From the IMG/VR virus record IMGVR_UViG_3300017971_000190, positions 1 through 64,000 of that record: 64,000 nt of DNA; one strand, 5' to 3'. Below are positions 1 to 12,426 of this stretch, piece by piece; positions within the stretch are counted from its first letter, which is position 1, and each line of letters opens with the position of its first letter. A program made the position numbers and the translations under genes. Below the pieces are notes generated by a model. The model was given only the letters and a program-made list of their open reading frames with translations, did not search any database and was not told the DNA's origin.

Positions 1-212
1 ACAACTGAAATGTAATTGATGTTTGCCTTTGATATGGCTGAGGCCTACGTTGAGTAGGAGAGTTCTACCGGTGGGGTCGGGTACCGGGTAGACAACTGAA
101 ATGTAATTGATGTTTGCCTTTGATATGGCTGAGGCCTACGTTGAGTAGGAGAGTTCTACCGGTGGGGTCGGGTACCGGGTAGACAACTGAAATGTAATCG
201 ATGTTTGCCTTT
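1..212 (+). repeat. 91-bp tandem repeat, 2 full copies plus a 30-bp partial copy
   Basis: 1-91 equals 92-182; 183-212 repeats the first 30 nt with one mismatch; the unit contains hairpins cctac/gtagg and tctacc..ggtaga. Confidence 0.9.
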
Positions 213-213
213 C

Positions 214-333
214 GTGGGTTTACACAGACTGTGGCTCGCAGAATCTGGGGAAGTAATTGGCGGTGAAGGAAGAAAATGAGCTTGGGGCATCTGGTGAAAC
301 ATCCAGACCGACTTTAACTGCCCGCCAACCCAC
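214..333 (+). ncRNA. Unidentified ~120-nt structured RNA, copy 1 (family A)
   Basis: Closed by gtggg/cccac; shares cagactgtggctcgcagaatctg and other blocks with 1307-1426; compensatory helix ttggcgg/ccgccaa. Confidence 0.75.
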
Positions 334-341
334 ATAATTTT

Positions 342-432
342 TGAGGGGCTGATGACGGTCAGAGATTGCGACTTTAAACCACAAGTCGCTAGAATTAATA
401 ACTGTGGGTTCGAGTCCCACCCCCTCGTTCCA
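342..432 (+). tRNA. Aberrant tRNA-like RNA (10-nt anticodon-position loop containing CTTTAAA)
   Basis: Acceptor tgagggg/cccctcg, T-arm gtggg-TTCGAGT-cccac, encoded CCA; helix gcgact/agtcgc has a 10-nt loop. Confidence 0.5.
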
Positions 433-716
433 GCAAGTTCCTAGAACATCTAAGAAGCTGTGATTGTATTGGGTCAGTGGCCTGTGCAGTACACAGTGGA
501 GACGGTTCGTTTAAGGAACGAGCTGCCTTTAGTCGAGATCCCGCGTTGGCGACTAGAGGGTTGGCAGTACCAATGCAGGGGTGCGAGGTGGGTAAGTCGG
601 TCTGGTAGATTTTACCTGTTTGTAATCCAGCGACACCACTTCAATAAATGGGACTAACAGGTCTCAACCATCTTTCGTTGTCACAAGTCGGTTGAGTATT
701 CACAAGATGACAACTA

Positions 717-781
717 GGAGTGAGGACACTAGCTTGAGTGCTTCAACGGTTTCGGCTCAAGTCCATAGCCCTTCTCCGAAA
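717..781 (+). ncRNA. Stem-loop/pseudoknot element (cttgag..ctcaag family)
   Basis: Stem 733-738/756-761; loop tttcgg complementary to downstream ccgaaa 776-781. Confidence 0.4.
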
Positions 782-966
782 AATTGATTGAAAACCGTTT
801 ACGCCTACACGGAGTTGGGGGTTCTACAGTTGTAGGAAGAGCTTAAAAACCCAAAGTAACAGGTGGGGCTACCGGGATGTATCTTTCCCTTTCAGTGTAA
901 GCCTGTTGCGGTAGGGAGAGTGGTGGACACGCTTGCCCCAACCCTCTACCCGAATTTTTCGTTTTT

Positions 967-1233
967 GGTAAATGGAAGGTTGGCCTAAAAGCAGCCATCC
1001 TTTAAAGAGTGAGGCGAAGACCTGTTGCTCGGATTTTTGCTGTGAGAGGCTTGGGTACGGTTAATCTCACAGGTTCCACGCGAGTCAAAAACGTAAAGTC
1101 GCTTTTTACGTAAATAGATTTGGGAGTGGCTCTCCCTAGCGTGCTGAAACAGGAGTACTTTCGGTTAAGTGAGGAGGCACCCCGGAGACGGTAAGGCCGA
1201 ATCCCTCTTTGGCGTAGCAGCACACCATTTACC
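967..1233 (+). ncRNA. 23S rRNA GTPase-associated centre (H43-H44, L11-binding domain) mimic with a 201-nt insertion
   Basis: 975-1010 + 1212-1225 align without gaps to E. coli 23S 1055-1104 (GAAGGTTGGCCTAAAAGCAGCCATCCTTTAAAGAGT|GCGTAGCAGCACAC); closed by a 9-bp stem ggtaaatgg/ccatttacc. Confidence 0.85.
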
Positions 1234-1306
1234 TTTTTCAGCCCCGTACCAAGTGTCCTATGGAGTTCGGGTTTAAATACTCCTCTTGGTACGCATTTTC
1301 AACCTT

Positions 1307-1426
1307 GTGGGTGTACTCAGACTGTGGCTCGCAGAATCTGAGGCAGTAATTGGTAAGAGATGAAGCTAATGAGCTTGACACCTGTAAAATAAGTTGCAGG
1401 GTGACTAAAACTGCTTACCAGCCCAC
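1307..1426 (+). ncRNA. Unidentified ~120-nt structured RNA, copy 2 (family A)
   Basis: Paralog of 214-333; helix changed to tggtaag/cttacca; closed by gtggg/cccac and followed by a T-run. Confidence 0.75.
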
Positions 1427-1514
1427 ATTTTTTGAGTTGCCCCCTAAGCACTGGTCTAACGATCCTGCTTAGGTGATCGGGGAGTGGATGGTACCTGAAG
1501 CTCCCCACTTTTTT

Positions 1515-1601
1515 GGAAGATGAACGGGAAGGCCGGGCATTAGTGCACAGTGTCGTACCGGTTCGACTCCGGTTTGGAAATCCAAGTTCTTGGCATCTTC
1601 C
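1515..1601 (+). ncRNA. tRNA-like RNA with T-arm but rearranged architecture
   Basis: 8-bp closing stem ggaagatg/catcttcc; T-arm accgg-TTCGACT-ccggt followed by an extra hairpin ttgga/tccaa before the 3' strand. Confidence 0.5.
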
Positions 1602-1708
1602 TTGAAAAACCGCCAGAGGAATTACACGTTATAATCTGGCCTCTACAGAGAGTAAAAAATGTGAGGTTGTGAGTGCTTTTCCAAAAACTCTCACCCGACA
1701 TAAGTTGG

Positions 1709-1804
1709 ATTTAGTGTCTTGTGCAGTCATAGATGGGAGGCGTTGAACTCTGGTCACCAGGTTGGAGGGAGCCAACAGTGAAATACCATCCATTGGCATT
1801 AAAT
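1709..1804 (+). ncRNA. 23S rRNA L1 stalk (H76-H78) mimic
   Basis: TGTGCAGTCATAGATGGGAGGCGTTGAA...GGAGCCAACAGTGAAATACCATCC matches 23S ~2109-2179 (UGUGUAGGAUAGGUGGGAGGCUUUGAA...GGAGCCGACCUUGAAAUACCACCC); 10-bp H76-like stem atttagtgtc/ggcattaaat. Confidence 0.85.
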
Positions 1805-1982
1805 TGTATAAATACAACAATTTGTGTTGGGTAATTTTCAGTTGCAACCCCTGGGTTCTGAGGTATTTGCCGGTAGCCTGCAGAACAGGGAAGTCCCGTA
1901 GCCGGATGGGTTTGGTAGTAGAACCTCTGACCCTTTTAATTGAGTCAGTAGCTGTACACTAAGAAAAAACTACCACTTTTTC

Positions 1983-2050
1983 GGAGCCTGTAATTTAAAT
2001 GGAAAAAGAAGCGTTAGCCTATTTCTAGGCTCGAATCCTAGCAGGTTCCT
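1983..2050 (+). tRNA. Degenerate tRNA-like RNA (8-bp acceptor, CTCGAAT T-loop)
   Basis: ggagcctg/caggttcc plus ctagg-CTCGAAT-cctag; D and anticodon arms weak. Confidence 0.4.
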
Positions 2051-2192
2051 TAAAGGGTGTAGTCTCCCTCCTGGGGAAACATTTCCTGGGTTATTTGGCC
2101 ATAAAAGACTACAACGCAAATCGAAAGTGCTTGTTGAATTGATTTGTGTAATCCGAACAAGCAGTTGTGAGTGCTTCTATAAACTCTCATTT

Positions 2193-2296
2193 GTGAGGTT
2201 CCTGGTTGTCCAAGGATGTAAACAGGTGAGTGCTTGGGTGTGTATTCTCGCTCAAGACTGGGCAGGCGAATTGACGCTAGCGAAGCTTGGCCTCAC
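2193..2296 (+). ncRNA. Closed structured RNA
   Basis: gtgagg/cctcac closing stem, internal cttggg/ctcaag stem, followed by a T-run. Confidence 0.4.
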
Positions 2297-2304
2297 ATTT
2301 TTAA

Positions 2305-2414
2305 TCCCTATGATAGAGGATCTACTGATCATTCTAGAACGGTCGGTTGGCAGAAAAAGCTTGTTGGACCCAACTTGTTTTTCTGTTGTCCTGGTTCGAT
2401 CCCAGGATGGGGAA
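2305..2414 (+). tRNA. Aberrant tRNA-like RNA with a very long variable arm and TTCTAGAA loop
   Basis: Acceptor tccctat/atgggga; D-arm taga-gga-tcta; 6-bp stem ctgatc/ggtcgg with a 10-nt loop; variable arm cagaaaaa/tttttctg; T-arm cctgg-TTCGATC-ccagg. Confidence 0.55.
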
Positions 2415-2451
2415 CTAAAGCACTTGGTTGTGAGTGATTCCTAAAACTCTC

Positions 2452-2575
2452 GGTTGTTGGTATACCAGGGTACTAACAATCTTAACACCTGGAAAAGCGT
2501 TTTGGTAGTTATCGTCAATAAATTGCTCTACTTGAGTGACGCCGGGCTCTCCTCAAGTGGTAAAACCCGGCAACC
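2452..2575 (+). ncRNA. Structured RNA with H-type pseudoknot
   Basis: ggttg/caacc ends; stem cttgag 2531/ctcaag 2552; loop gccggg 2541 pairs with cccggc 2566. Confidence 0.55.
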
Positions 2576-2587
2576 TTTTTATTTTTC

Positions 2588-2616
2588 TTGACTTCCTTCT
2601 TTTAGCACAGCATAAT
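2588..2616 (+). promoter_or_regulatory. Sigma70-like promoter
   Basis: TTGACT-17-CATAAT upstream of the ORF at 2649. Confidence 0.55.
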
Positions 2617-2648
2617 AATTGGTGTTAAACAGCTAAAAGGAGTCACAA

Positions 2649-3140
2649 ATGGTGCAGCAACACAAAATCCGAGAAGGCGTCCCCTACACCGATGGTAAAT
2701 CCATCAGAGTTATTGTTGATACTGAAGCTGGGAGTTTTGAGAACGGCACACCCGTGTATTATAGAACCACCCGAGACCTTTTCAAGGAAGTACACGAATG
2801 CTCTTTGGGAGCGTTTGCTCGGTGGGCAACACTGCAACACGAAGAGCTGTCAGATCAAATCGTACTGGCTATTCGCCCAAATAACGGAGCAGATGTTCTC
2901 CCAGACAATCTAGAAACCAGGGTGACAAGGATTTTGAAGACCGAGATTCTGAAAATTGAAGCCGGTTTGGGAACCGTTTCTTTTAATAAAAACGTAATTC
3001 CAGCCAAACTGCTGAGACAGTTGATTCAGGATTACGAAACACTCTACGGCTCAGAAACGCTTAATATCGAAGTAGTTTTCAGTCTTTTCCTTGACGGTGC
3101 GGTGGACCGCACGGAATTCCGGTTTAAGTCTGAACAATAA
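2649..3140 (+). CDS. Hypothetical protein (163 aa)
   Basis: ORF with SD aaaaggag. Confidence 0.75.
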   Translation: MVQQHKIREGVPYTDGKSIRVIVDTEAGSFENGTPVYYRTTRDLFKEVHECSLGAFARWATLQHEELSDQIVLAIRPNNGADVLPDNLETRVTRILKTEILKIEAGLGTVSFNKNVIPAKLLRQLIQDYETLYGSETLNIEVVFSLFLDGAVDRTEFRFKSEQ

Positions 3141-3230
3141 AGGGAGTTCGAGCTAGCGCTTCTTCCTGAGGGGCTTTGGTCCTGAAAATTCTAGCACACA
3201 CACGCTTTTATCAAGAAAGGAGATAGGATT

Positions 3231-3266
3231 ATGAAGCGCATTCCTGTTAACCTAATCAACCTCTAA
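3231..3266 (+). CDS. Putative 11-aa mini-peptide MKRIPVNLINL
   Basis: Strong SD aaaggag upstream of ATG. Confidence 0.3.
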   Translation: MKRIPVNLINL

Positions 3267-3297
3267 CCCTCCCACTTAAAGCTGAGTTAGCACTCAG

Positions 3298-3368
3298 GTC
3301 CGGTTGGTGGACGTACCAGAGGAAGTATTCTGTGTTCGTTGGTACCGACACAGGGTATTAAACCGGAC
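3298..3368 (+). ncRNA. Closed structured RNA
   Basis: gtccggtt/aaccggac stem; internal tattctgtgt/acacagggta helix. Confidence 0.45.
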
Positions 3369-3372
3369 ATCT

Positions 3373-3444
3373 GGCCCCATCGTTCAATGGTTAGGACACA
3401 GGATTTTCATTCCTGAGATCGGGTTTCGACTACCCGTGGGGTCA
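3373..3444 (+). tRNA. tRNA-Glu(TTC)
   Basis: Cloverleaf; anticodon arm cagga-ttTTCat-tcctg; T-stem has T53-A61. Confidence 0.9.
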
Positions 3445-3474
3445 ATAAACTATTAAAAGAAAGGTCATACTACA

Positions 3475-3663
3475 ATGGTGGAAAAGGAAAACAGTTTCTA
3501 CAAAGAACAATTTTCTATTTTGCAAAGGCGTCTTCGTGGTTCCATAGAAGAAGCAAAGAAGGAAGGAGACACGAAGAGAGAGATTGCTCTTCTGAGGGTA
3601 GGTTGTGACGTTGCGAACATTTTGAAGGGTGTGAACATAAATTACAACCCTCCTGGTTACTAA
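3475..3663 (+). CDS. Hypothetical protein (62 aa)
   Basis: ORF with SD aaagg between tRNAs. Confidence 0.6.
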   Translation: MVEKENSFYKEQFSILQRRLRGSIEEAKKEGDTKREIALLRVGCDVANILKGVNINYNPPGY

Positions 3664-3670
3664 AAGTTTA

Positions 3671-3743
3671 GGGCTCGTCGTCTAATTGGTAAGGCTCCAA
3701 GCTCATAACTTGGTCATTCGGGTTTCGATCACCCGCGAGCCCA
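3671..3743 (+). tRNA. tRNA with CAT anticodon (Met or Ile2)
   Basis: Cloverleaf; ccaag-ctCATaa-cttgg; G1-C72 paired, so not an initiator; T53-A61. Confidence 0.88.
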
Positions 3744-3826
3744 CTATGTTACTGACTACCTGAGACCGCAGCTCAAAGGTTAGTAGCAGAACACCTCAAT
3801 TAAGTGACGGTAGAACACTGAGGTGT

Positions 3827-3988
3827 GTGCAAGCAGGTACTACCGGGAAACTATTTTCTACCCTGTAACCACGTAGTTCCGAGGAGCACAAAAGAATGAT
3901 CCACCTTTTGTCCCTACCTGGAACTTAGCGTAGTTTCCCGCGTCTTTGGCGAAAGCCGTACTGCGTTGAGGATCAAACCTGCTTGCAC
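3827..3988 (+). ncRNA. ~160-nt multi-helix structured RNA
   Basis: 12-bp closing stem gtgcaagcaggt/acctgcttgcac; nested cgggaaacta/tagtttcccg, agttcc/ggaact, acaaaag/cttttgt, ggc-GAAA-gcc. Confidence 0.65.
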
Positions 3989-4000
3989 TTTTTCTTTTTT

Positions 4001-4082
4001 GCCCACATGGTGGAACAGGTAGACACGCGAATTTTAGGTGTTCGTGGCTAACGCCGTGGGAGTTCGAGTCTCTCTGTGGGCA
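4001..4082 (+). tRNA. tRNA-Leu(TAG)
   Basis: Class II cloverleaf; cgaat-ttTAGgt-gttcg; variable arm; A73. Confidence 0.92.
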
Positions 4083-4217
4083 CTAGGTCATTCTAATTTT
4101 AAGTCCTGGTAATGGTGCTAGGCAAACGTGACAAGCTTTCCATCCTTCACGTTCGAGAAAAGTTAGAATGACCTTAAATTTGTTGGGAGTTTGAGCTAAA
4201 CAAAAGAGGTACTTAAA

Positions 4218-4550
4218 ATGATTTTCACCTATGAGATAAAACGTCACAGTGTGGATTTCCTTTTCGAGGACGGCAGCTTTCATTCAATAGTGGTGGGACA
4301 AGGGCCTGGTTACTGGTACCGAATCATTTCAAAATTGAGAGAGTTGGGAAAAGAGATAAATCCGGAAGACTTTGACCAGGGTATAGAACGTCTATACTAC
4401 GATTACGCCACCGAGGAACTGAGAGGAAAAACAGAAAAGCAGAAAGAATTGGGATACTTTACCTGTCCCCAGTGCAACGTGATTTATCCTTGTCGTTCTT
4501 TCAAATATCAAAATCCTTGCGACAACTGTCGTTATGTAAAAATTACCTAG
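4218..4550 (+). CDS. Hypothetical protein, C-terminal CxxC..CxxC Zn ribbon
   Basis: ORF with SD gaggt. Confidence 0.7.
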   Translation: MIFTYEIKRHSVDFLFEDGSFHSIVVGQGPGYWYRIISKLRELGKEINPEDFDQGIERLYYDYATEELRGKTEKQKELGYFTCPQCNVIYPCRSFKYQNPCDNCRYVKIT

Positions 4551-4639
4551 TCACTTCGTGGTTAGGAGTGGGGCAATGGAATTGAGAAACCCCCTAGAGG
4601 TTATTGGGCAAAAAAGAAAGCAGGAAAGATAGATTAATA

Positions 4640-4700
4640 GTTCACATGGTAGTTTAGGTACCAGCGGGAAACCGTGTAGGTTCGAGTCCTACTGTGGGCA
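4640..4700 (+). tRNA. D-armless 61-nt derivative of tRNA-Leu(TAG)
   Basis: Acceptor gttcaca/tgtgggc, TTTAGGT retained, variable hairpin gcgg/ccgt, T-arm gtagg-TTCGAGT-cctac; the 3' end matches that of 4001-4082. Confidence 0.65.
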
Positions 4701-4703
4701 CTA

Positions 4704-4874
4704 GTTGGTAGTTCTGGGAGACCTTGGTGAAACACTCCATGGGAACCCACGGTAAAAACGAGACGTGGTAGGTTGTGTAGGTAACTACAGAGCCCTTCTA
4801 TCTAGTTACTCCTTGAGGGTAACGGGGGTAGTCGGATCTTGTTTTTAGAAACAAGGCCCACCTGAACTACCAAC
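4704..4874 (+). ncRNA. ~170-nt structured RNA
   Basis: 11-bp closing stem gttggtagttc/gaactaccaac with several internal hairpins. Confidence 0.6.
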
Positions 4875-5059
4875 AACTTCTTCCTAAGCACTTCGTGTTT
4901 GGGAGTGGGGCACTGGCATTTTAAAGTCCAACTCCATGTGGTTAGGGCAAACCAGTTCAAGACTTGGGCCTTTTGGCTAGCCCAGATGTATTTCTGATTG
5001 CCGACAAGTTACAGGCTGGTTGATACCAATTACCACGAAAGAAAGAGCTAGCCACTATG

Positions 5060-5144
5060 GGAAGGATGACCGAGCGGCTGAAGGTACACGCCTGCTAAGC
5101 GTGCGTAGGGAAACCTACCGAGGGTTCGAATCCCTCTCCTTCCG
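5060..5144 (+). tRNA. tRNA-Ser(GCT)
   Basis: Class II cloverleaf; cacgc-ctGCTaa-gcgtg; G73. Confidence 0.95.
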
Positions 5145-5248
5145 ACGCAGTTGGCCCCGCTGCACATCCTATCGAGAATAATTACCACAGATGTGTGTAC
5201 ACAAAGATGCTAGGATCTTTATTTGTGGTGGTTATTCTAGGGGCAATT

Positions 5249-5378
5249 GGCAGAGTGGCGAAACGAAAAGAGGCCCATACTAGTTAACCTCTTTCTTTGG
5301 TAAACGCGCGGTAACTCCGTGATTGGTCAATCAGTTAACTGGTTCACTATCTTCCAGGTTCAAATCCTGGCTCTGTCA
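5249..5378 (+). tRNA. tRNA-like RNA with a hairpin inserted in the D-loop and a degenerate anticodon arm
   Basis: ggcagag/ctctgtc; Leu/Ser-type D-arm tggcgaaac..tggtaaacgc split by aaagagg/cctcttt; T-arm ccagg-TTCAAAT-cctgg. Confidence 0.55.
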
Positions 5379-5461
5379 AGATGCTATCGCATACACTGCC
5401 TTCAAAAAGTGTATTGACAAATTAAAAAATGTTGTCACAAGACTACTAGGAGGTATTAATC

Positions 5462-5632
5462 ATGGAAAGACTTATTTATCGCTTTATTCCTAACGTTGAG
5501 ACCTTAATTGAGCAATACGAGTTGGAAGGTTTCGAGGTGCGGGGATACAGTGAGTACAGTTCTGACGGGATTCCTAGGGTGGCTGAGATGGTCAAGTGGG
5601 TTTCTGATAAACCGTCTCAAGAAAAGGAATGA
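5462..5632 (+). CDS. Hypothetical protein (56 aa; below the ORF-track cutoff)
   Basis: SD aggaggt, ATG..TGA open frame. Confidence 0.65.
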   Translation: MERLIYRFIPNVETLIEQYELEGFEVRGYSEYSSDGIPRVAEMVKWVSDKPSQEKE

Positions 5633-5657
5633 TTTTTGATTTTCTTCTCTTTCTTTT

Positions 5658-5732
5658 CGGGGAATAACTCAGTCTGGTAGAGTGCCTGCTTTGGGAGCAG
5701 GAAGTTCGCAGGTTCGAATCCTGTTTCCCCGA
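5658..5732 (+). tRNA. tRNA-Pro(TGG)
   Basis: Cloverleaf; C1-G72; cctgc-ttTGGga-gcagg. Confidence 0.95.
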
Positions 5733-5798
5733 TTAAGTTTATTTTTCAAAGTACACGAAAAATAAACTACCTCACTGGTACAGAGGTTAAAGTACTGT

Positions 5799-5959
5799 GG
5801 ACAAGTGTTGTGCAGAGGGTAGCACAGAGAGTAAGCTAACGAAAAGCGAAACCTGCCGTGCGAGAAGAGCAGGTCCACGGTGTAATCGGAATGCCTCTAG
5901 TGTGGTGCACCACAGCTAGTTTTAATGCCAATGAGAGGTTCGATTCCTCTCCTTGTCCA
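5799..5959 (+). ncRNA. tRNA-like termini enclosing a ~125-nt pseudoknotted insert
   Basis: ggacaag/cttgtcc plus T-arm gagagg-TTCGATT-cctctc; acctgc/gcaggt stem whose loop ccgtg pairs with cacgg. Confidence 0.55.
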
Positions 5960-5981
5960 AATGTTGGGTTGGTACTTTACC

Positions 5982-6180
5982 AACGACAACAGCTTTCTTC
6001 GGGAGCCCGGAAGAAAGGCTTAACCAGCGCCAGTGAGCTTCAATGGGTCGTGCACACACCGCGTTGAAGATGACTCTGGGGTAGTAGGAAGGTGCACAGA
6101 ACGGCAAACTAGGCTTTTCCTAGGTTGGCTTCTAGGCACCGATCCCTCCTTCAGTGGTGTGTGGGGCTTGGTTGTTCGTT
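5982..6180 (+). ncRNA. ~200-nt structured RNA with GTGCAC loop
   Basis: acgacaac/gttgttcgt ends; agctttcttc/gaagaaaggct hairpin; cttcaa/ttgaag stem; gtgcac at 6050 and 6092. Confidence 0.5.
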
Positions 6181-6219
6181 CACACAGGGCTCAATTTTAA
6201 AAATTATTAAAGGTGAAAA

Positions 6220-6417
6220 ATGAAGCTAACTAAAAAACAAGAAAAATTGGTAAAAGAGGTTATTGGAGACGGCACCGATTTTCCAAAATTTACAAACGAC
6301 CCTTATGTTAATCACAGAGTAGACATGCTTGTTTGTGACTGTCCACCTTGGGAGGAGTTGAGTAAGGAAGAGCAAGATTTGTATTTTGAGGAAGTAGAAG
6401 CTTCTAAAATGGAATAA
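6220..6417 (+). CDS. Hypothetical protein (65 aa)
   Basis: ORF with SD aaggtg. Confidence 0.65.
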   Translation: MKLTKKQEKLVKEVIGDGTDFPKFTNDPYVNHRVDMLVCDCPPWEELSKEEQDLYFEEVEASKME

Positions 6418-6438
6418 TTATTAATAGTATTGTTTCTT

Positions 6439-6510
6439 TGAGGCGTAGGCAAACGGTAAGCCACGAATTTTTGGTGTTCGGCATTGGAGGTTCGAATCCT
6501 CCCGCCTCAA
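6439..6510 (+). tRNA. tRNA-Gln(TTG)
   Basis: Cloverleaf; T1-A72; cgaat-ttTTGgt-gttcg. Confidence 0.88.
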
Positions 6511-6512
6511 AA

Positions 6513-6662
6513 ATGAAAAAAGAAAAACCTTTGAAGGATTTACTGCCGAATCCATGTTGTTGCAGTTTTCCCATGGAACCATTGAAAGTAACAAAACCAC
6601 TTAGAGAAAAATTGTGGAAGTGTCTCAAGTGTGGTAAGTTGATCTATAAATACAAAAACTAG
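6513..6662 (+). CDS. Small Cys-rich hypothetical protein (49 aa)
   Basis: ATG after tRNA-Gln; CC..CxxC. Confidence 0.45.
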   Translation: MKKEKPLKDLLPNPCCCSFPMEPLKVTKPLREKLWKCLKCGKLIYKYKN

Positions 6663-6665
6663 TGC

Positions 6666-6755
6666 GGAGTGTATAGTGTTTAAATGGCAACACGGCTAGT
6701 GGCTAACGGGTCATACCTGCCAGGCAAAAGTGGGTTCAAATCCTGCAACACTCCA
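6666..6755 (+). tRNA. Degenerate tRNA-like RNA
   Basis: ggagtgt/acactcc, D-arm gtgtt/aacac, TTCAAAT loop; anticodon arm poorly paired. Confidence 0.4.
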
Positions 6756-6824
6756 TATAATGTTTAGCGAGAGACAAGCAGTTGGGCTCTCGTGGCGACT
6801 TTGTAGAGGGTGTACAATTTTTCT

Positions 6825-6897
6825 GGGCGATTAACTCAGTTGGCAGAGTGCAATCTTTACGCGGTTGAAGTCACAGGTTCAAACCCTGTATCGCCCA
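6825..6897 (+). tRNA. tRNA-Val(TAC)
   Basis: Cloverleaf; caatc-ttTACgc-ggttg. Confidence 0.9.
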
Positions 6898-6905
6898 AAA
6901 AGAAG

Positions 6906-6934
6906 TTGACTTTACCACTACTCTGTGTTAGCCT
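6906..6934 (+). promoter_or_regulatory. Sigma70-like promoter
   Basis: TTGACT-17-TAGCCT with TG upstream of the -10. Confidence 0.45.
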
Positions 6935-7072
6935 TTTCTTAATCCGTGAGAGATCAGGCTCAACTGCTCTCACGGGGTTGTCAACGGGGTGGGCCAATCC
7001 CCTGACGGCGGGAGCTGCGTTTCCTTTTGGAAGCAGTCTCCCGTTTTAATTTTAGAAAGGAAACAAAGCACC

Positions 7073-7273
7073 ATGGTAGAAGAAAAAGAAACCTACGAAG
7101 CTATCAATTTTGGTTGGGACGGTGATGATTTTGTAACCGAAGATGTTACAGGCAAAATTCGTCGCTATCACGGTGCCAAAATTACCGACGTTAAGCGAGA
7201 GTGTTCTGTGGAAGTTCAAGACGGTAAAGTGATTGGACACTTTTCGTTTCAATTACCGAAAAAGAAAGGCTAA
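7073..7273 (+). CDS. Hypothetical protein
   Basis: SD aaagg; start re-assigned to ATG 7073. Confidence 0.65.
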   Translation: MVEEKETYEAINFGWDGDDFVTEDVTGKIRRYHGAKITDVKRECSVEVQDGKVIGHFSFQLPKKKG

Positions 7274-7277
7274 GAGA

Positions 7278-7565
7278 ATGACTATGGTAAAAGAACACGA
7301 ACTTAAGTATGGGGTAGATGGTTGCCTCTTAACCTGGCAAAACCCTTTTCCTGAAGAAGTAACCTGTGCTTGTTGTGGAAAAGAAGGTGCACGTTTAGCT
7401 TTTGTTCTACAAGAATCAGGCAAAAAGGAGCACGCTTGTAATTTATATCAAAACGATCCGGATGGAGAGGGATTTTGGGTGCACGATTCAGCTGCTTTTG
7501 CAGTTTATTTGTGCAGAGATATTAATTGCCCTGAAAAAGCTACCGCTAAGTGGAATCAAGCTTAA
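7278..7565 (+). CDS. Hypothetical Cys-containing protein
   Basis: ORF directly after the previous gene. Confidence 0.65.
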   Translation: MTMVKEHELKYGVDGCLLTWQNPFPEEVTCACCGKEGARLAFVLQESGKKEHACNLYQNDPDGEGFWVHDSAAFAVYLCRDINCPEKATAKWNQA

Positions 7566-7574
7566 AATATTTTT

Positions 7575-7647
7575 GGGTCCTTAGCTCAGCTGGTAGAGCA
7601 CCGGACTTTTAATCCGTAGGTCTTCGGTTCAAACCCGAAAGGACTCA
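7575..7647 (+). tRNA. tRNA-Lys(TTT)
   Basis: Cloverleaf; ccgga-ctTTTaa-tccgt. Confidence 0.92.
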
Positions 7648-7699
7648 TTAGTTCACCCATCAGAATAGTAAGTTTTAAGGAGAAAGATCATGAAGAAGA

Positions 7700-8377
7700 T
7701 TGTGCCTTCAAATTGTTGTAAACAGAATCAAGTATTTAAACTTAAACGAAAGAAGAACTGTTTTGAAAACATACCCAAGTATGGTTTATCCTCCCTTTGG
7801 AGGATTGAAGGAGTACCTTCACACCTTTGCTAAGTTGGACGGCAGCAATCTCAGATTTGAATGGAGCAAGAAAAAAGGTTGGTACAAAGTTGGAACCCGG
7901 CATCGTCTTGTAGACGAAAGTGATTCTATTTTTGGAAAAGCTCCCCTTATTTTTCAAGAAACTTTGGCTGACCAGTGCGAGAAAATTTGTAGAGATAATC
8001 GTTGGCAGAGAGCTGTGATTTTCTGCGAGTACTATGGACCACAAAGCTTTGCTGGCCTGCATGAAATTGGAGGTACGATGACGCTAACGGTTATAGACGT
8101 AGCTCCTTACAAAAAAGGCATTTTACCACCTACTGATTTTCTAAAACTGTTTGGAGAATTAGGGCCGCATTACCTGGGATACTTGAAGTGGAATTTTAAT
8201 TTCATAAATCGAGTTCATCAGGGTTTAGAGCCTGAAGCTAGTTTTGAAGGAGTAGTTGGTAAAGCTAAAGGGAAAGGAAATACACTACTTCTCTACAAAA
8301 CCAAAACTCAAGCCTGGAAAGATGAAGTTAAAAAACGATACAGTAAGAAGGAAGCAGAAAAAATAATTCATAGCTAA
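7700..8377 (+). CDS. ATP-dependent RNA ligase (Rnl2-like nucleotidyltransferase)
   Basis: Motifs KLDGSN (I), FCEYYG (III), FEGVV (IV), YKTK (V). Confidence 0.75.
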   Translation: MCLQIVVNRIKYLNLNERRTVLKTYPSMVYPPFGGLKEYLHTFAKLDGSNLRFEWSKKKGWYKVGTRHRLVDESDSIFGKAPLIFQETLADQCEKICRDNRWQRAVIFCEYYGPQSFAGLHEIGGTMTLTVIDVAPYKKGILPPTDFLKLFGELGPHYLGYLKWNFNFINRVHQGLEPEASFEGVVGKAKGKGNTLLLYKTKTQAWKDEVKKRYSKKEAEKIIHS

Positions 8378-8414
8378 GGTAAACATCGATTAACTTTTCA
8401 GAAAGGAAAGCCCT

Positions 8415-8651
8415 ATGTCTATTGTGCGCAAAGCCACTGTTAAGGGTGAAGTGGAAACACCCGCGTGTGAAAAGTGTGGAGAACCCCTAAAGCTGGGTAC
8501 ACGAAAACCCGTTTTTAACCCTTTTCACGAGGGAGCCAAAAAACTAGGCAACGGGTTAATTTGTGAGACCCCCGTTGCTCATGATTATTGGTTTTCCCCT
8601 TGTTCGCATTGCACACCTCCTCATGTAGTAATTAGAAAATTGGTATGCTGA
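8415..8651 (+). CDS. Hypothetical Zn-binding protein
   Basis: CxxC..CxxC; SD. Confidence 0.6.
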   Translation: MSIVRKATVKGEVETPACEKCGEPLKLGTRKPVFNPFHEGAKKLGNGLICETPVAHDYWFSPCSHCTPPHVVIRKLVC

Positions 8652-8652
8652 T

Positions 8653-8946
8653 TTGTCTTCCCGCCGCACCACCAAAAAAGAAAAACATCAGGCCATTTTT
8701 CTTGGTCTCTACACCAATGAAACTGGTTCTGATGTTGTCTACGTTTGGGAAGTTTGTAACGATCTCAAACCTGTTAAAGATTTTGCTGTTTGCTACACCC
8801 CTATTGTTAAAAATGGTAAGATGCTTCGTGGTACTTTTGAACGCATAGCTGATTGGAAAGGGTTTCCTTATTACGGCGGTCAGGAAGAATTTCTAAAACA
8901 TTTTCCTCATAGAGTGGAAAAAATTAAAATAGAGTTTGAGGAGTAG
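8653..8946 (+). CDS. Hypothetical protein, GLYT..G..VYV domain family
   Basis: Similar to both halves of 10125-10562. Confidence 0.65.
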   Translation: MSSRRTTKKEKHQAIFLGLYTNETGSDVVYVWEVCNDLKPVKDFAVCYTPIVKNGKMLRGTFERIADWKGFPYYGGQEEFLKHFPHRVEKIKIEFEE

Positions 8947-8951
8947 TTGTT

Positions 8952-9395
8952 TTGGCTCATCAATTAAATTGGCCTAGTATCAAGTATTTTCTTAAAGATT
9001 ACCTACTAGCTTTGGTCTACGAAGACTACAAACGGTGGCCTTATTGTTGTCAGGGTTTTCTTAAAAAAGAAAGCTACAGTGACTTTTTTTCTGGATTCAA
9101 GACTATTCTAACTAAAGGCTACGTGCCTTATGAAATTAGTGATCTTTGTGATCATCTTGCTCCTTTAATTCTTCCACGTCTCCAACGATTCAGAAAAGTT
9201 GTCTACAGTCATCCGGCTGATATGACTTTCGAAGAGTGGGAAGAAAAATTGGACAAAATGCTCTTTTCTTTTCAATTTGTTGTAGATAGAAGAGGCGATG
9301 ATGTTGGAGCTGACGACGAGAGTACGGCTACGCACAGTCAAGTAGAAGAAGGTTTTCAACTTTTTGGTGCTTATTTTCGCCACCTTTGGCTTTGA
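8952..9395 (+). CDS. Hypothetical protein
   Basis: 147-aa ORF in gene string. Confidence 0.65.
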   Translation: MAHQLNWPSIKYFLKDYLLALVYEDYKRWPYCCQGFLKKESYSDFFSGFKTILTKGYVPYEISDLCDHLAPLILPRLQRFRKVVYSHPADMTFEEWEEKLDKMLFSFQFVVDRRGDDVGADDESTATHSQVEEGFQLFGAYFRHLWL

Positions 9396-9403
9396 AAAAG
9401 TTG

Positions 9404-9431
9404 TTGACAACTTGTTAGCACTGTGTAATAC
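9404..9431 (+). promoter_or_regulatory. Sigma70-like promoter
   Basis: TTGACA-16-TAATAC with TGTG. Confidence 0.45.
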
Positions 9432-9442
9432 TACTTTTTGTC

Positions 9443-9652
9443 ATGCCATTTTTGTACAAAGTCTCCTACCGTGGTGAGAGAAAGCTGGTAGAAGCCAATT
9501 TTCCTCACCAAGCTTTGAAAAAAGCCTTTCCTGGTTTTAAATTTGAAGCAGGTCTTAGGACCAATGCAGCTCCTCTTACCTTCGTTTATAGTGGACGCAC
9601 TGAAGAAGAGGGCCATGCTGTAGTAGAAGAGCAAGAGGAGTGGTTAACGTGA
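9443..9652 (+). CDS. Hypothetical protein
   Basis: ORF after promoter. Confidence 0.55.
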   Translation: MPFLYKVSYRGERKLVEANFPHQALKKAFPGFKFEAGLRTNAAPLTFVYSGRTEEEGHAVVEEQEEWLT

Positions 9653-9903
9653 GTAGGGTAGAAGTCAAAGGAAATGGTCGGTACAGTATGGCCTTTGGTG
9701 TTGACCTCTTTCCCTCCATTGGGGCCTTTGTTCAGGTGTGGGACCATACAAAGTACGACATGCCTGACGGCGACAACCTTGTTGAAGAACACGACCGGAG
9801 CACTACGGGTGGATTTAATCTCACTGAAGAGTTTGTAATTCAACTGGCTCGCCGGTACGATATTGATCTAGACCCCAGAGAAGTGTGGGAAGTTTTTGAC
9901 TAA
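9640..9903 (+). CDS. Hypothetical protein
   Basis: Overlapping gene string; true start probably GTG 9649. Confidence 0.6.
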   Translation: MVNVSRVEVKGNGRYSMAFGVDLFPSIGAFVQVWDHTKYDMPDGDNLVEEHDRSTTGGFNLTEEFVIQLARRYDIDLDPREVWEVFD

Positions 9904-10099
9904 ACGAGAAAAAATCATAAGGGGCCTTATTAGAGATAGTACCGATTGGGCTGTCCATCATATTTTGGAGCTGGAAAAAGAAAATGCAGCTCTTCGTGAG
10001 GAAATTGAAGAGTTGGAAGATAGATGTGATTGGACTGATACACACGGTCAAAAGTGTGACTGTATAGAATGCAAAGTACCAGGAGCTGACGAGCTTTAA
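9896..10099 (+). CDS. Hypothetical coiled-coil/Cys protein
   Basis: ORF in gene string. Confidence 0.55.
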   Translation: MTKREKIIRGLIRDSTDWAVHHILELEKENAALREEIEELEDRCDWTDTHGQKCDCIECKVPGADEL

Positions 10100-10124
10100 C
10101 CAAATTTCAAGGAGAACAAACCTT

Positions 10125-10562
10125 ATGAGAAATTCAATTGCCAAAGGGCTTTATACCAACAACAGTGGGAGGCAAACTGTTTATCTTTTCGATTCTTGGC
10201 AAGACAACTGGTTAAACCCTCCTAAATTTACTGTGGATTACGAGGACGTTAAAACTGGAGACCAAGAAGAAATTCCTCTTGATCTATTTAAAATACGTTT
10301 TCCTCATAAAATTGACAAAATAGAAGTACAGTTCAAAGATGTGAATAAAAAATTCGACTGTGAAGCTAAGCCCTCTTTTGGTCTTTACACTGATCACAGG
10401 GGCAGAAGTGTGGTTTACGTTTATGATGTTTGGGGTACCAAGTACAGAAACGGTGTTGAGTACGCCAACGTCAAAAATAATGAGAGAATAGATTTATCGT
10501 GGGAAGAGTTCAACAAGAAGTACCCTCACAAGGTGGAAAAAGTTCTGATTGAGTTCAAGTAA
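10125..10562 (+). CDS. Hypothetical protein with two tandem GLYT..G..VY domains
   Basis: Internal duplication visible in translation; SD aggag. Confidence 0.75.
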   Translation: MRNSIAKGLYTNNSGRQTVYLFDSWQDNWLNPPKFTVDYEDVKTGDQEEIPLDLFKIRFPHKIDKIEVQFKDVNKKFDCEAKPSFGLYTDHRGRSVVYVYDVWGTKYRNGVEYANVKNNERIDLSWEEFNKKYPHKVEKVLIEFK

Positions 10563-10740
10563 CTCAGTCGGAGGGTCGTGCACGGCTGGCCCTTAGCGCA
10601 ATCTGAGTTAAGAAAATGGGCTGCCAGATGACATCGCTCATGAGACTGATCCTCTCGAAACCCCCGTTTTCTTGTAATAATTTTCTACGGCAGTGATCCC
10701 GGTTGTCTCAGACCCTGCAATCCGTGTGTTTTAAGATGCC
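10561..10740 (+). ncRNA. Structured intergenic region
   Basis: Stems aactcag/ctgagtt and aagaaaatggg/cccgttttctt; shares gggtcgtgcac with 6045-6055. Confidence 0.35.
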
Positions 10741-10745
10741 CTCTC

Positions 10746-11033
10746 ATGCTGACTAAATTGCTATCTAAACTTGGAATTTCCTACAGTTTTAATTTTGAAA
10801 CTGAAGAAAGTAGACGAGAAGAACACGCTATTTTGCGAGCTTGGGAAAGATTTAGTATCAGACTAACTCCCTCTGACCTGGAAACAATCACTGCACAGCT
10901 TAAAAAAGAGAACCCTAAACCCATCAAAAATAAAAGCAGAAACAGAAGTGTATACGAGATTACTTATTTTGGTGTGCCGATGAAGGTACTCTGCAACAAC
11001 ACTTCTAAATTGATTTACACTTTTTTAAGGTGA
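10746..11033 (+). CDS. Hypothetical protein
   Basis: 95-aa ORF. Confidence 0.6.
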   Translation: MLTKLLSKLGISYSFNFETEESRREEHAILRAWERFSIRLTPSDLETITAQLKKENPKPIKNKSRNRSVYEITYFGVPMKVLCNNTSKLIYTFLR

Positions 11034-11037
11034 AGAG

Positions 11038-11238
11038 ATGGATGCAGATAAAACCAGCATATGTCATATCGAGTACGATGACGAAACCAACTCTTGGGTT
11101 TGTATTCATTGTAAAGATAAGTTTACAGAAGTTAGAAAGCCTCCCAAAACTACAGCGTTAGATATAGCTGTTCCTCTACTTGGAGCTGCTGCTGCTTTTT
11201 TCTTGATAATTGTAGTCCCAATTATCAGATTTAGATAA
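11038..11238 (+). CDS. Small Zn-ribbon protein with C-terminal TM helix
   Basis: CxxC plus hydrophobic tail. Confidence 0.55.
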   Translation: MDADKTSICHIEYDDETNSWVCIHCKDKFTEVRKPPKTTALDIAVPLLGAAAAFFLIIVVPIIRFR

Positions 11239-11247
11239 TTTTTAAAG

Positions 11248-11276
11248 TTGACAACGCAAAGAAAATCTGCTAAATT
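11248..11276 (+). promoter_or_regulatory. Sigma70-like promoter
   Basis: TTGACA-17-TAAATT. Confidence 0.6.
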
Positions 11277-11303
11277 TTAGAAATCGAAAGGAAAGTGTGA
11301 CCC

Positions 11304-11627
11304 GTGTGTTATTTTCAGGACATTGCTGTAAAAAAAGTTGTAGTAGAAGTCATTTCCGAGCTGGTGGGAAAGCGTAAGCGCTTCACCGGTTGGGAAGTGA
11401 ATCAAAAATTACAAAACCGCAAAGGCTTTGCTCACCTTCCCCCACCCTGGCAGATCAGCTCCTATGTACGGGAACTGTTTAATGGGCATAACAGTGCTTT
11501 TTCAGGTTATGCCTGTTATCCAGTTGATGGAGGCCCCTTGCTCTATTTCCCAATTCCGTACTATGTGAGAAATCATGTCGAAAAAATCCAAAAAGAAATC
11601 CAAACGGAAGGCCAAACCGAAAAGTAA
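11304..11627 (+). CDS. Hypothetical protein
   Basis: SD aaagg, GTG start. Confidence 0.6.
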   Translation: MCYFQDIAVKKVVVEVISELVGKRKRFTGWEVNQKLQNRKGFAHLPPPWQISSYVRELFNGHNSAFSGYACYPVDGGPLLYFPIPYYVRNHVEKIQKEIQTEGQTEK

Positions 11628-12426
11628 CCCTTCTGTTTCGATGCCCAGTGTTCAGGAACTTTTTGGTTCCAGTTGTCGTTATCGCCTTAGCAGTTCTTTT
11701 CGTGGACCTCAATTAGAAGGTTACGAATTCTTATGTGCTTTCGAAAACAAAGTACACTCTTACCACACCCCCACAATGCAGAAGCTTGGCAATATTAAAC
11801 AAGCTTGGCATGGTACCAATAAGGCTGCACTTAAAAGCATTGCTGTGGATGGATTACTCACGCCTTTTCAGCGTCGAAAGCGAGATCGCTGGACTAGCAT
11901 ACACGGTATGTTTGGACCAGGAATTTATTTAGCTCCTAACATTGAAAAAGCGGCTATGTTCGCATGGCAGCATAAGCATTTGAAGTTTGTTCTTCAATGC
12001 TATGTTGCTTTGGGAAAACCTCATTTTGCTACTCAAACAGGAAACTATTACGAAACAGCTGAAATGGAAGACAAGCATAGTGTCATAGGTGGAAGAGGAT
12101 CACTGACTGGAGCTTGGGGTGGTAGACTCTTAAACGAAGAGTGGGTAATTTTCGATAATCAACAAGCTACTGTAGACATGGTACTCGTGTACAGATGCGT
12201 GGAAACTCCTAAGGCTACCCCATTTCGAGGCTCGATTGGACGACGATTTTATAACAGTAGTAGAGAACCACAAGGTGTTGTTCGTTACCACCCTTGCAAA
12301 CGAAATGGCAAGCTTTGTCGCAATGCTTTTGGCTCTGGTGGCTGTGTGGAAAAAGGTATAACTACTGGAGCGAGTGCCTTTTCAGATTACTGCAGAGATT
12401 ATCAAGTATCCTTGATTCACAAATAA
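11575..12426 (+). CDS. PARP-like (H-Y-E class) ADP-ribosyltransferase domain protein
   Basis: WHGT, GMFGPGIYLA, VALGK, NEEWVIF motifs. Confidence 0.8.
   Translation: MSKKSKKKSKRKAKPKSNPSVSMPSVQELFGSSCRYRLSSSFRGPQLEGYEFLCAFENKVHSYHTPTMQKLGNIKQAWHGTNKAALKSIAVDGLLTPFQRRKRDRWTSIHGMFGPGIYLAPNIEKAAMFAWQHKHLKFVLQCYVALGKPHFATQTGNYYETAEMEDKHSVIGGRGSLTGAWGGRLLNEEWVIFDNQQATVDMVLVYRCVETPKATPFRGSIGRRFYNSSREPQGVVRYHPCKRNGKLCRNAFGSGGCVEKGITTGASAFSDYCRDYQVSLIHK

Follow-up and report, generated by a model that had tools for sequence, protein, structure and literature searches.

The 64,000-nucleotide (nt) stretch of DNA considered here (hereafter the window; positions 1 to 64,000 of IMG/VR virus record IMGVR_UViG_3300017971_000190) opens inside an array of transfer RNA (tRNA) genes and other small structured RNAs. 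This array is part of a phage RNA island of about 10.4 kb, all on the same strand, which runs from window position -2730 to 7650, so that window 1-7650 is its larger part. The non-tRNA modules exist and are conserved with compensatory base changes, and two of them are look-alikes of stalk domains of 23S ribosomal RNA (rRNA). One of these (967-1233) copies the GTPase-associated centre (GAC), the site of ribosomal protein uL11, and the other (1693-1832) copies the L1 stalk, the site of uL1 and of a contact with the tRNA elbow. The stalk copies are the most novel part of the island, which otherwise resembles known kinds. The reading that we favour, at a probability of roughly 55%, is that the island carries cargo for the translation apparatus and that its stalk copies act in trans as molecular mimics.

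Two copies of 23S rRNA stalk domains

In the GAC copy, a closing helix resembling helix 42 (H42) is followed by H43 and its loop, the UUUAAAGAG junction, an inserted arm that spans 64-336 nt across the family, the top of H44, and the 3′ strand of the closing helix. The arm branches off the 5′ strand of H44, and a GUAAYA loop caps that helix. In the window, the extra arm measures about 197 nt and the loop reads GCGUAGCAGC. The conserved 5′ block is 90% identical to H43/H44 of Escherichia coli 23S rRNA over 30 nt, with 30 of 33 aligned bases identical, and the conserved 58-nt core is matched in H43 with its loop, the junction UUUAAAGA, and the H44 loop GUAAUA. The GAC query finds the 23S gene in 5426 of 5426 E. 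coli genomes, and the Rfam model LSU_rRNA_archaea (for the large ribosomal subunit, LSU) matches the copy locally at model positions 1182-1231. An RNAalifold consensus of 17 family members contains the H42-like closing helix and the H43 and H44 hairpins. Double-sided compensatory changes occur in 14 of its 22 pairs, including the base of the inserted arm, and number 3-11 per pair in the closing helix. The minimum-free-energy fold of the window copy alone gives the same helices. Within the family, the H44 loop and the equivalent of A1095 are invariant.

The GAC element was the sole non-tRNA match (972-1228) when window 1-3360 was compared by blastn with isolate phages. Its carriers are Pseudomonas phages Astolliot, UNO-G1W1, Milchi, and pf16, Aeromonas phage 4_4572, and Xanthomonas phage XacN1, in which elements of about 180 nt lie inside tRNA arrays without annotation as RNA. 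Nothing is annotated at this place in pf16 and Astolliot, and the other isolates have either nothing or a 'hypothetical protein', on the opposite strand in UNO-G1W1. One exact 21-mer locates the element in 34 viral contigs. Among 28 distinct viral members, the closing stem averages 9.25 bp, compared with 3.8 bp for mismatched 5′ and 3′ flanks; 23 of the 28 are on the same strand as tRNAs, often 13-32 nt away, and none has an opposite-strand tRNA. A 3′ signature specific to the mimic (GCACAC, where rRNA has GCTCAC) occurs in 44 genome-bin contigs from many phyla, at least 25 of which have the 5′ core 100-300 nt upstream. Many of these genome-bin members are found in arrays of up to 25 same-strand tRNAs, and the evidence suggests that they are prophages or mis-binned phages. 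No protein family is common to the flanks of the viral loci, which leaves tRNA as the only constant neighbour. The GAC copy is a widespread RNA family embedded in phage tRNA arrays that behaves genomically like a tRNA gene. It corresponds to no family in Rfam 15, and full-text literature searches on phage rRNA mimics and on structured RNAs in phage tRNA arrays yielded no description of it.

The 5′ core differs among members (L183-L226), with CCATCC, CCACCA, or CCATCA before TTTAAAG. These variants recall differences between the 23S rRNAs of bacterial phyla, and the mimic may, we presume, track the rRNA of its own host. Separately, an open reading frame (ORF) with a PARP-family ADP-ribosyltransferase domain (PF00644) is present at window 11575-12426 (+), 4 kb downstream of the island. 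It is of note in that a related enzyme class, that of the toxin Tre23, modifies the GAC loop mimicked by the phage.

Several other identities for the GAC copy were rejected. A genuine 23S gene or gene fragment is at odds with similarity that stops at the domain borders, with the 64-336-nt arm interrupting H44, with the unit's own covarying closing helix and tRNA flanks, and with a genome that has no LSU or small-subunit (SSU) gene. A whole-model LSU and SSU search of the genome returned nothing, although this method does not see isolated domains. A ribosomal-protein leader was dismissed since the neighbours are tRNAs and RNA modules and the phage genome contains neither a uL11 nor a uL1 gene. 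By inspection, a possible second GAC copy at 6122-6145 (75% over 24 nt) does not keep the H43 pairing, and the GAGA hairpin of the inserted arm, read as similar to the sarcin-ricin loop, has no bulged-G motif.

The inserted arm also raises the idea of a protein-bound scaffold, in which the rRNA-like part would be a stable, autonomously folding handle that binds an abundant host protein and that shields and displays the arm, where the real, lineage-specific function would lie. This would fit inserts that vary widely in length and sequence beside a nearly invariant GAC core, a covarying arm base, and the common GNRA-hairpin motif (GGCACCCC...GGUAAGGC) found in a subset of the arms. However, the shortest inserts (64-90 nt) are too small for much independent function and the L1 mimic is without a comparable insert, and we consider a scaffold distinctly unlikely.

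In the L1 copy, 1693-1707 pairs with 1818-1832 to form a 15-bp closing helix, and AATTTT comes next. One cmscan run aligned window 1697-1831 with positions 2109-2265 of LSU_rRNA_bacteria (49.5 bits against a gathering threshold of 50, E 8e-13). Since cmscan recovered LSU fragments inconsistently, direct alignment was used as confirmation. Window 1720-1794 aligns with E. coli 23S rRNA 2111-2184 over 75 columns with a score of 72, compared with a maximum of 47 in 200 shuffles, and the blocks GGGAGGC, GGAGCC, and GAAATACCA are identical in the two. Both sequence and structure (H76-78) place the module with the L1 stalk. A weak c-di-GMP-II match at 1727-1796 (21.8 bits versus 53.5) overlies the stalk copy and was discarded. 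Further viral elements of this type were found on three contigs: L065 (93% identical to E. coli), L084 (diverged and intergenic), and L074 (at a contig end). For covariation, the family amounts to these three other viral elements only, which are few and very different. A loose L1 pattern returned mostly chance matches, and two candidates, counted among these three elements, passed filtering. Sliding alignment of the island with E. coli 16S, 23S, and 5S rRNA revealed no third rRNA-like module; thus, the stalk copies are isolated domains and not rRNA genes.

Instead of engaging ribosomal proteins, the stalk copies, and perhaps the anticodon-less tRNA-like RNAs described below, might be anti-defence decoys, i.e., sacrificial substrates for host or competitor enzymes that disable translation through modification or cleavage of these RNA sites. 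Phage-array tRNAs are thought to counter tRNA-targeting defences by replacing tRNAs cut by anticodon nucleases, and it is in tRNA arrays that the GAC elements are found. The island has an RNA ligase gene at its flank, and a spread over unrelated phages without a common neighbouring protein suits a self-sufficient RNA. Outside the seed, moreover, no part of the family varies less than the H44 loop and A1095 equivalent. No phage defence directed at the GAC or the L1 stalk is known to us, which counts against decoys, and RNAs with a copy number far below that of ribosomes would need much higher affinity. The toxin Tre23 ADP-ribosylates exactly this loop, at 1095-1098 of 23S H44 (PMC8661411), but it is an interbacterial toxin and not a phage defence. 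On balance, a decoy role directed at enzymes seems unlikely.

Conservation and folding of the modules

Our segmentation of window 1-7650 gives about 30 modules (Table 1), which makes the count of about 25 units in the preliminary description a fair one. Decisive support for these modules is comparative, and single-sequence criteria are weak. Relatives were sought through the ORFs of the array; one search returned a useful relative and a second ORF matched only itself. The relative, L063, is a 2.4-kb contig from another metagenome that covers window 2178-4110 at 72-84% identity (about 80%). Double-sided compensatory pairs distinguish the two sequences in M1, M2 (2305-2413), and M3 (2427-2575), with two pairs each, and in M4 and M5a, with four pairs each. 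The L063 copy of M1 carries a hairpin insertion, and that of M5 has a 19-nt deletion in one arm while the 12-bp closing stem is unchanged. M3 is 89% identical to its counterpart, compared with 72% for the adjoining protein gene. Within the array, A1 (214-333) and A2 (1307-1426) form a pair of paralogues; each has a 6-bp closing stem, and four double-sided compensatory pairs distinguish the two. The preliminary description had pictured discrete closed-stem modules, and a lack of conserved stems in relatives would have spoken against it. L063 shows the opposite, the stems being kept through compensation in M1-M4 and M5a and without change in M5. The modules are real structured RNAs under selection that alternate with tRNAs on a single strand.

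Folding statistics give a fainter picture. The sliding-window folding-energy z averages -0.51 in the array and -0.16 in coding sequence (p 0.004), a weak difference. When folding is confined to module boundaries, z falls to -3.7 for the L1 mimic and to -4.6 for 4085-4174, with 0 of 200 shuffles as low in either case, and to -3.05 for A2 and -3.16 for the tRNA-like unit at 343-426. Of the six units first offered as examples of closed stems, five do close with a terminal helix; 5982-6180 is weaker, as its proposed closing stem needs a bulge and is absent from the minimum-free-energy fold. A uniform packaging by CA and a T-run had also been proposed. The closing stem is followed by (C)A and a T-run in about nine modules (A1, A2, the GAC and L1 mimics, b, d2, x3, M1, and M5), but the pattern is not above the genome background. 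Single-sequence folding is the evidence for 431-961, b, c, d, f, g, h, j, B1/B2, n, and p.

These observations bear on whether the array could be genomic debris and punctuation, i.e., decayed tRNA duplicates, rRNA scraps, terminators, and spacers that are functionless as RNAs. Such an origin would suit TL4, a truncated copy of the neighbouring tRNA-Leu, as well as the weak overall thermodynamic signal, the terminator-like stems with T-runs that end several modules and are no commoner here than elsewhere in the genome, and the roughly half of the modules without comparative support. However, compensatory changes maintain the helices of M1-M5a and A1/A2, M3 is better conserved than the protein gene beside it, and the covarying GAC closing stem is kept in at least 28 viral loci and at least 25 genome-bin contigs, which drift cannot achieve. 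Debris is already disfavoured for the comparatively tested modules, and as an account of the array it is very unlikely.

In seven units (343-426, 1983-2049, 2305-2413, 4640-4700, 5298-5379, 5798-5958, and 6666-6755), an acceptor stem and a canonical T arm are present but the normal anticodon arm is missing. Judged by the RF00005 gathering score and by a 7-nt loop on a 5-bp stem, they fall outside canonical tRNAs, and TL1 was detected by ARAGORN only at a relaxed threshold. The compensatory changes in M2 indicate that it is under selection. At relaxed settings, ARAGORN also reported a 'permuted' transfer-messenger RNA (tmRNA) at 337-991, which was rejected given its implausible tag and the absence of Rfam support.

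Among the remaining modules, a 26-nt motif, GTTGTGAGTGNTT...AAACTCTC, has three copies in the genome, all within the array (1666-1696, 2164-2190, and 2427-2452), and the third is 100% conserved in L063. Exact-pattern scans of viral contigs gave no matches for the A1/A2 core or the M5 core. A cmscan comparison of the island with Rfam recognised tRNAs, the tmRNA, a group I intron, and LSU fragments only, and left the other modules unmatched; at gathering thresholds, tRNAs alone were reported in the window array. The Rfam 15 covariance models found no GOLLD, ROOL, HEARO, Y RNA, 6S, RNase P, or other described noncoding RNA family in the island, and the ribosomal-protein leader families of Rfam had no match there. 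Most of the units are unassigned, as first described, but the GAC and L1 mimics, the tRNA-like derivatives, and the tmRNA and intron-bearing tRNA upstream of the window can now be named.

Extent, gene content, and transcription of the island

The source record is a 221,679-bp viral contig from a sediment metagenome, with a CheckV completeness of about 63%. Its recognisable content comprises topoisomerase II subunits, an RNA-ligase-like gene, and few other identifiable proteins, and on these grounds the phage, which is uncultivated and marine, looks like a novel jumbo phage. The same phage is also represented by three independent assemblies (L057-L059). These match window 91-13140 at 100% identity and extend upstream, where the non-coding block begins about 2.7 kb before window base 1. 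The suspicion that the window starts inside a larger array was therefore correct. The 91-nt repeat at the start of the window has 2.3 copies in this record and 1.3 copies, preceded by a promoter, in L057-L059; this difference in copy number implies that the record's contig broke at the repeat. Since other assemblies of the phage measure 191 kb and 298 kb, the record is either incomplete or mis-joined. While its 5′ end is the 91-nt repeat, its 3′ end (genome 221,300-221,679) is a run of GAC/GAT that reads as poly-Asp on the minus strand.

Over its whole length, the island holds the tmRNA, 10 canonical tRNAs, one intron-bearing tRNA-Leu(UAA), about seven tRNA-shaped RNAs, about 20 other folded modules, and the two stalk copies. 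The eight normal tRNAs first counted within 1-7650 are confirmed by the agreement of ARAGORN and Rfam. The group I intron occupies the anticodon loop of tRNA-Leu(UAA), its classic position in cyanobacteria and plastids.

Transcription of the island appears to start at a family of sigma-70-like promoters on the + strand, in which TTGACA and an extended -10 element enclose a spacer that contains a TAGCAC box. One member (L058:7384) sits just upstream of the first base of the window. Both array promoters are followed by a shared transcribed leader box of about 30-35 nt that forms the start of the 91-nt repeat and may be an antitermination or processing signal. A strong GC hairpin with a T-run at 2541-2590, terminator-like in form, closes the ORF-free block before the promoter of ORF 2649. 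At least three promoters and a terminator point to at least three transcription units. The first would run from the tmRNA to the intron-bearing tRNA-Leu; the second would span 2.6 kb of RNA modules only (window ~60-2590); and the third would combine small genes, tRNAs, and modules up to the tRNA-Lys at 7648. Polycistronic precursors are likely, judging from this layout. The single precursor of the preliminary description, however, gives way to several polycistronic units, considering the three or more promoters, the terminator at 2541-2590, and the nine small ORFs. A generic promoter and terminator scan showed no enrichment in the array.

The nine small ORFs, all with ribosome-binding sites, are interleaved with tRNAs and RNA modules within 2649-7565; they occupy about 2.1 kb of this interval, which is to that extent not made of RNA modules, and a Pfam search of the array's small ORFs gave no matches. 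Upstream of them, window 1-2640 has no open frame longer than about 100 codons. This invites the question of whether the ORF-free stretches could themselves encode micro-proteins, with RNA structure being incidental. Short ORFs of 30-70 codons are numerous in the region, and the island does contain real small genes. Yet none of the ORFs in window 1-2640 matches the nine real genes in the quality of its ribosome-binding site, substitutions relative to L063 pair across helices and are not codon-periodic, and the stalk copies and tRNA-like units have direct RNA homologues. Hidden genes of this kind are extremely improbable. An 11-codon mini-ORF at 3231-3266 (MKRIPVNLINL), which has a ribosome-binding site and reads MKRNLANLINL in L063, may be a leader peptide.

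Around the island, an RNA-ligase-like gene (phrog_548, with a KxDG motif) follows directly after the last tRNA at window 7700/7781-8377 (+). Relatives with 35-64% identity are found on other large phage contigs, in some cases beside tRNA arrays, and these contigs had no RNA modules in common with the island. Further tRNAs (Thr, Arg, Tyr) lie outside the island at window 59131-59211 and genome 127818-128147, and the locus at 127.5 kb is the sole other stop-rich stretch of the genome. The GC content reaches 0.50-0.52 at window 14000-16000, compared with about 0.40 around it; this stretch covers ORF 13802-15319, which has no PHROG match.

Table 1. Coordinates of promoters, RNA modules, tRNAs, and small genes of the island (window positions unless marked otherwise).
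Feature	Position	Strand	Evidence or remark
Promoter-family sites	L058:4669-4700; L058:7384-7415; window 2588-2616, 9404, 50068; genome 66741	+	
Upstream island part			Sigma-70-like promoter, tmRNA, 69-codon ORF, tRNA-Leu(CAA), intron-bearing tRNA-Leu(UAA), second promoter copy
tmRNA, one-piece, phage-encoded	L058:5028-5403 (~window -2324 to -1949)		Rfam 123 bits; tag peptide ANDNDVPMAVANAA
tRNA-Leu(UAA) with ~230-nt group I intron in anticodon loop	L058:7047-7345 (~window -305 to -7)		Intron_gpI 29 bits, E 2e-4
91-nt tandem repeat, 2.3 copies	1-212	+	First ~30 nt = leader box after both array promoters
A1, paralogue of A2: closing stem, conserved 5′ hairpin, covarying inner stem	214-333	+	
TL1: acceptor, D, and T arms; 7-bp 'anticodon' stem with 8-nt loop	343-426	+	Rfam tRNA-Sec 23 bits (gathering 47)
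x1-x3: ~530 nt without ORF, several predicted hairpins	431-961	+	Folding
Mimic of 23S rRNA GAC (H42 top, H43, H44; uL11 site)	967-1233	+	9-bp closing stem, then TTTTT
Hairpin module: 9-bp stem, then CA TTTT	1245-1293	+	Folding
A2, paralogue of A1, then CA TTTTTT	1307-1426	+	z -3.05
b: two hairpins, 3′ end CAC TTTTTT	1443-1506	+	Folding
c: closed, internal T-arm-like hairpin GGTTCGACTCC	1515-1601	+	Folding
Mimic of 23S rRNA L1 stalk (H76-78; uL1 site, tRNA-elbow contact)	1693-1832	+	
d1 and d2, both closed	1846-1975	+	Folding
Short tRNA-like: 9-bp acceptor-like stem, T-arm-like hairpin	1983-2049	+	z -2.31
f and g, with second copy of the 26-nt motif	2057-2190	+	Folding
M1: 8-bp closing stem, then CA TTTTT	2192-2297	+	Kept in relative L063
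M2: acceptor and T arm, ~17-bp rod replacing anticodon arm	2305-2413	+	Compensatory changes vs relative
M3: third motif copy and long helix, then terminator-like GC hairpin with T-run	2427-2590	+	
Promoter-like site TTGACT-N17-CATAAT, TAGCAC family	2588-2616	+	
Small protein gene, 163 amino acids, first of nine	2649-3140	+	No family
Stretch nearly identical in relative, with 11-codon mini-ORF	3141-3266	+	
M4: 8-bp closing stem, abuts tRNA-Glu	3300-3370	+	Relative comparison
tRNA-Glu(UUC)	3372-3445	+	ARAGORN, Rfam
Other interleaved small ORFs	3475-3663; 4218-4550; 5462-5632; 6220-6417; 6513-6662; 7073-7273; 7278-7565	+	
tRNA-Met	3671-3744	+	ARAGORN, Rfam
M5a: two hairpins	3747-3826	+	Relative comparison
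M5: 12-bp closing stem, multibranch, then TTTTT	3827-3988	+	Kept in relative
tRNA-Leu(UAG)	4001-4083	+	ARAGORN, Rfam
h: 16-bp closing stem; first 27 nt identical in relative	4085-4174	+	z -4.59
B1; paralogue B2 at 4883-4975, common 5′ hairpin and GAGTGGGGCA box	4546-4636	+	
TL4: tRNA-Leu(UAG) paralogue, ~20-nt deletion removing D and anticodon parts	4640-4700	+	tRNA 20.1 bits (vs 29)
j: 11-bp closing stem, five-branch fold	4704-4874	+	Folding
tRNA-Ser	5060-5144	+	ARAGORN, Rfam
tRNA-like with T arm	5298-5379	+	ARAGORN at relaxed settings only
tRNA-Pro	5657-5733	+	ARAGORN, Rfam
TL5: acceptor, D-like, and T arms; ~95-nt domain replacing anticodon arm	5798-5958	+	Relaxed ARAGORN, folding
n: structured stretch (first described as 5982-6180), closing stem uncertain	5960-6200	+	Folding
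tRNA-Gln	6438-6511	+	ARAGORN, Rfam
TL6: acceptor, D, and T arms; aberrant middle	6666-6755	+	Relaxed ARAGORN, folding
tRNA-Val	6824-6898	+	ARAGORN, Rfam
p: three strong hairpins before ORF 7073-7273	6899-7050	+	Folding
tRNA-Lys, last of array	7574-7648	+	ARAGORN, Rfam

Proposed function, related systems, and significance

Both rRNA domains, the GAC and the L1 stalk, can fold on their own, and each binds a single protein: uL11 in the first case and uL1 in the second. The two proteins are peripheral and exchangeable on the ribosome. uL11 is needed for the activation of RelA, and uL1 acts as the repressor of its own operon by binding a mimic of its rRNA site in the mRNA. From the sequence, we infer that the island RNAs are co-transcribed, processed, and bound by proteins, possibly in a decoy role. 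At least three host-type promoters (sigma-70-like, extended -10) would drive the synthesis of several long RNAs that each span multiple genes, and these precursors would probably be cut by the enzymes that process host tRNA operons (RNase P, RNase Z, RNase E, and 3′ exonucleases). The terminal helices, often followed by a U-rich single strand, would delimit and protect the products. The stalk copies would then bind the partners of the real rRNA sites, with free uL11 the putative partner of the GAC copy and free uL1 that of the L1 copy, and possibly also enzymes or toxins that target these sites. Such binding would remodel or shield the host translation apparatus during infection, and capture of uL11 or uL1 could alter ribosome composition, ribosomal-protein synthesis, or the stringent response.

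Several observations weigh against reading the island as translation cargo with stalk copies that act in trans. The LSU match of the L1 copy lies 0.5 bit below the gathering threshold and is absent from two other cmscan runs. In the GAC family, the A1067 equivalent varies in some members, so that not every functional contact is kept; this argues that contacts with translation factors are not the selected feature. The large variable arm in H44, to which nothing in rRNA corresponds, may be where the function lies. For the array as a whole, comparative support covers window 214-333, 967-1233, 1307-1426, and 2178-4110, and about half of the modules rest on single-sequence folding. T-runs preceded by a stem of at least 7 bp make up 49 of 82 in the array, compared with 35-86 of 81-148 in coding parts of this genome. 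As TL4 has the look of a tRNA-Leu duplicate in decay, not every module need be functional. Finally, the sequencing runs found to hold phage sequence are DNA metagenomes only.

The nearest organisational precedent for the island is the tRNA cluster of phage T4, which matures from multi-gene precursors through host tRNA-processing enzymes. In that cluster, tRNAs are interleaved with two further small, stable transcripts, RNAs C and D (species 1 and 2), to which no function has yet been assigned (PMC9697503). The two are alike in that phage tRNAs on one strand alternate with other small structured RNAs. In contrast to the T4 cluster, the island is about 10 times larger, its non-tRNA modules outnumber tRNAs by about 3 to 1, it includes a tmRNA and two rRNA-domain copies, and it is split by promoters and small ORFs. 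No resemblance in sequence to RNAs C or D was noticed, although no search aimed at it was made. GOLLD and ROOL are large structured phage-associated noncoding RNAs of unknown function that commonly occur beside tRNA genes (PMC12286853). The island has no Rfam match to them, and its modules are much smaller and include two with an identifiable rRNA origin. The tRNA-like modules TL5, M2, and TL1, in which an acceptor and T-arm module is joined to a non-tRNA domain, resemble YrlA Y RNAs and tmRNA, which likewise have a tRNA-like domain (PMC4201824). Unlike YrlA, however, they have no match in Rfam, and their non-tRNA part differs in architecture; no Ro/Rsr gene was noticed in the vicinity, although no search aimed at one was made.

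In mechanism, ribosomal-protein leaders and phage RNA mimics are the nearest precedents. Examples of the former are the L10 leader and, in the mRNA of the L11 operon, the binding site for L1; such an RNA copies the 23S site of uL1, or that of the uL10/uL11 region, and binds the protein. rRNA mimicry in the leaders of ribosomal-protein operons has been presented as a general principle (Meyer, 2018, as related in PMC11109978). These leaders act in cis, lie 5′ of cellular ribosomal-protein genes, and have limited identity to rRNA, whereas the stalk copies are stand-alone units in phage tRNA arrays, are far closer to rRNA, and adjoin no ribosomal-protein gene. RNA anti-CRISPRs are phage-encoded RNA mimics. 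Pseudo-ToxI, by the account in PMC3475682, is a phage copy of a host RNA element that competes for its protein partner. These two kinds of RNA mimic defence RNAs; in the island, core rRNA domains are mimicked and the partner is putative.

Beyond this phage, we suggest only tentatively that phages of many phyla carry both stalk RNAs in their tRNA arrays as an unrecognised class of trans-acting rRNA decoys, which may titrate uL11 and uL1 or absorb rRNA-attacking enzymes, and that the island is a toolkit of translation mimics. If this is true, stripping of uL11 and uL1 would blunt the uL11-dependent stringent response or retune ribosomes.

Phage tRNA arrays are usually read as aids to codon usage or as spares against tRNA-cutting defences, and the gaps between their tRNAs are left unannotated. 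Some of these gaps hold conserved copies of rRNA domains, which widens the known cargo of phages from tRNA and tmRNA to pieces of the ribosome. The GAC look-alike offers an inexpensive experimental handle, given that its carriers include cultured phages of Pseudomonas, Aeromonas, and Xanthomonas, that its native partner uL11 is well studied, and that a toxin targets the same loop. The island also offers about 20 further folded RNAs for study. If the stalk RNAs act as decoys, they would point to still-unknown defences that target rRNA, and if they bind uL11 and uL1, they would represent a new viral route to the manipulation of ribosome composition or stress signalling.

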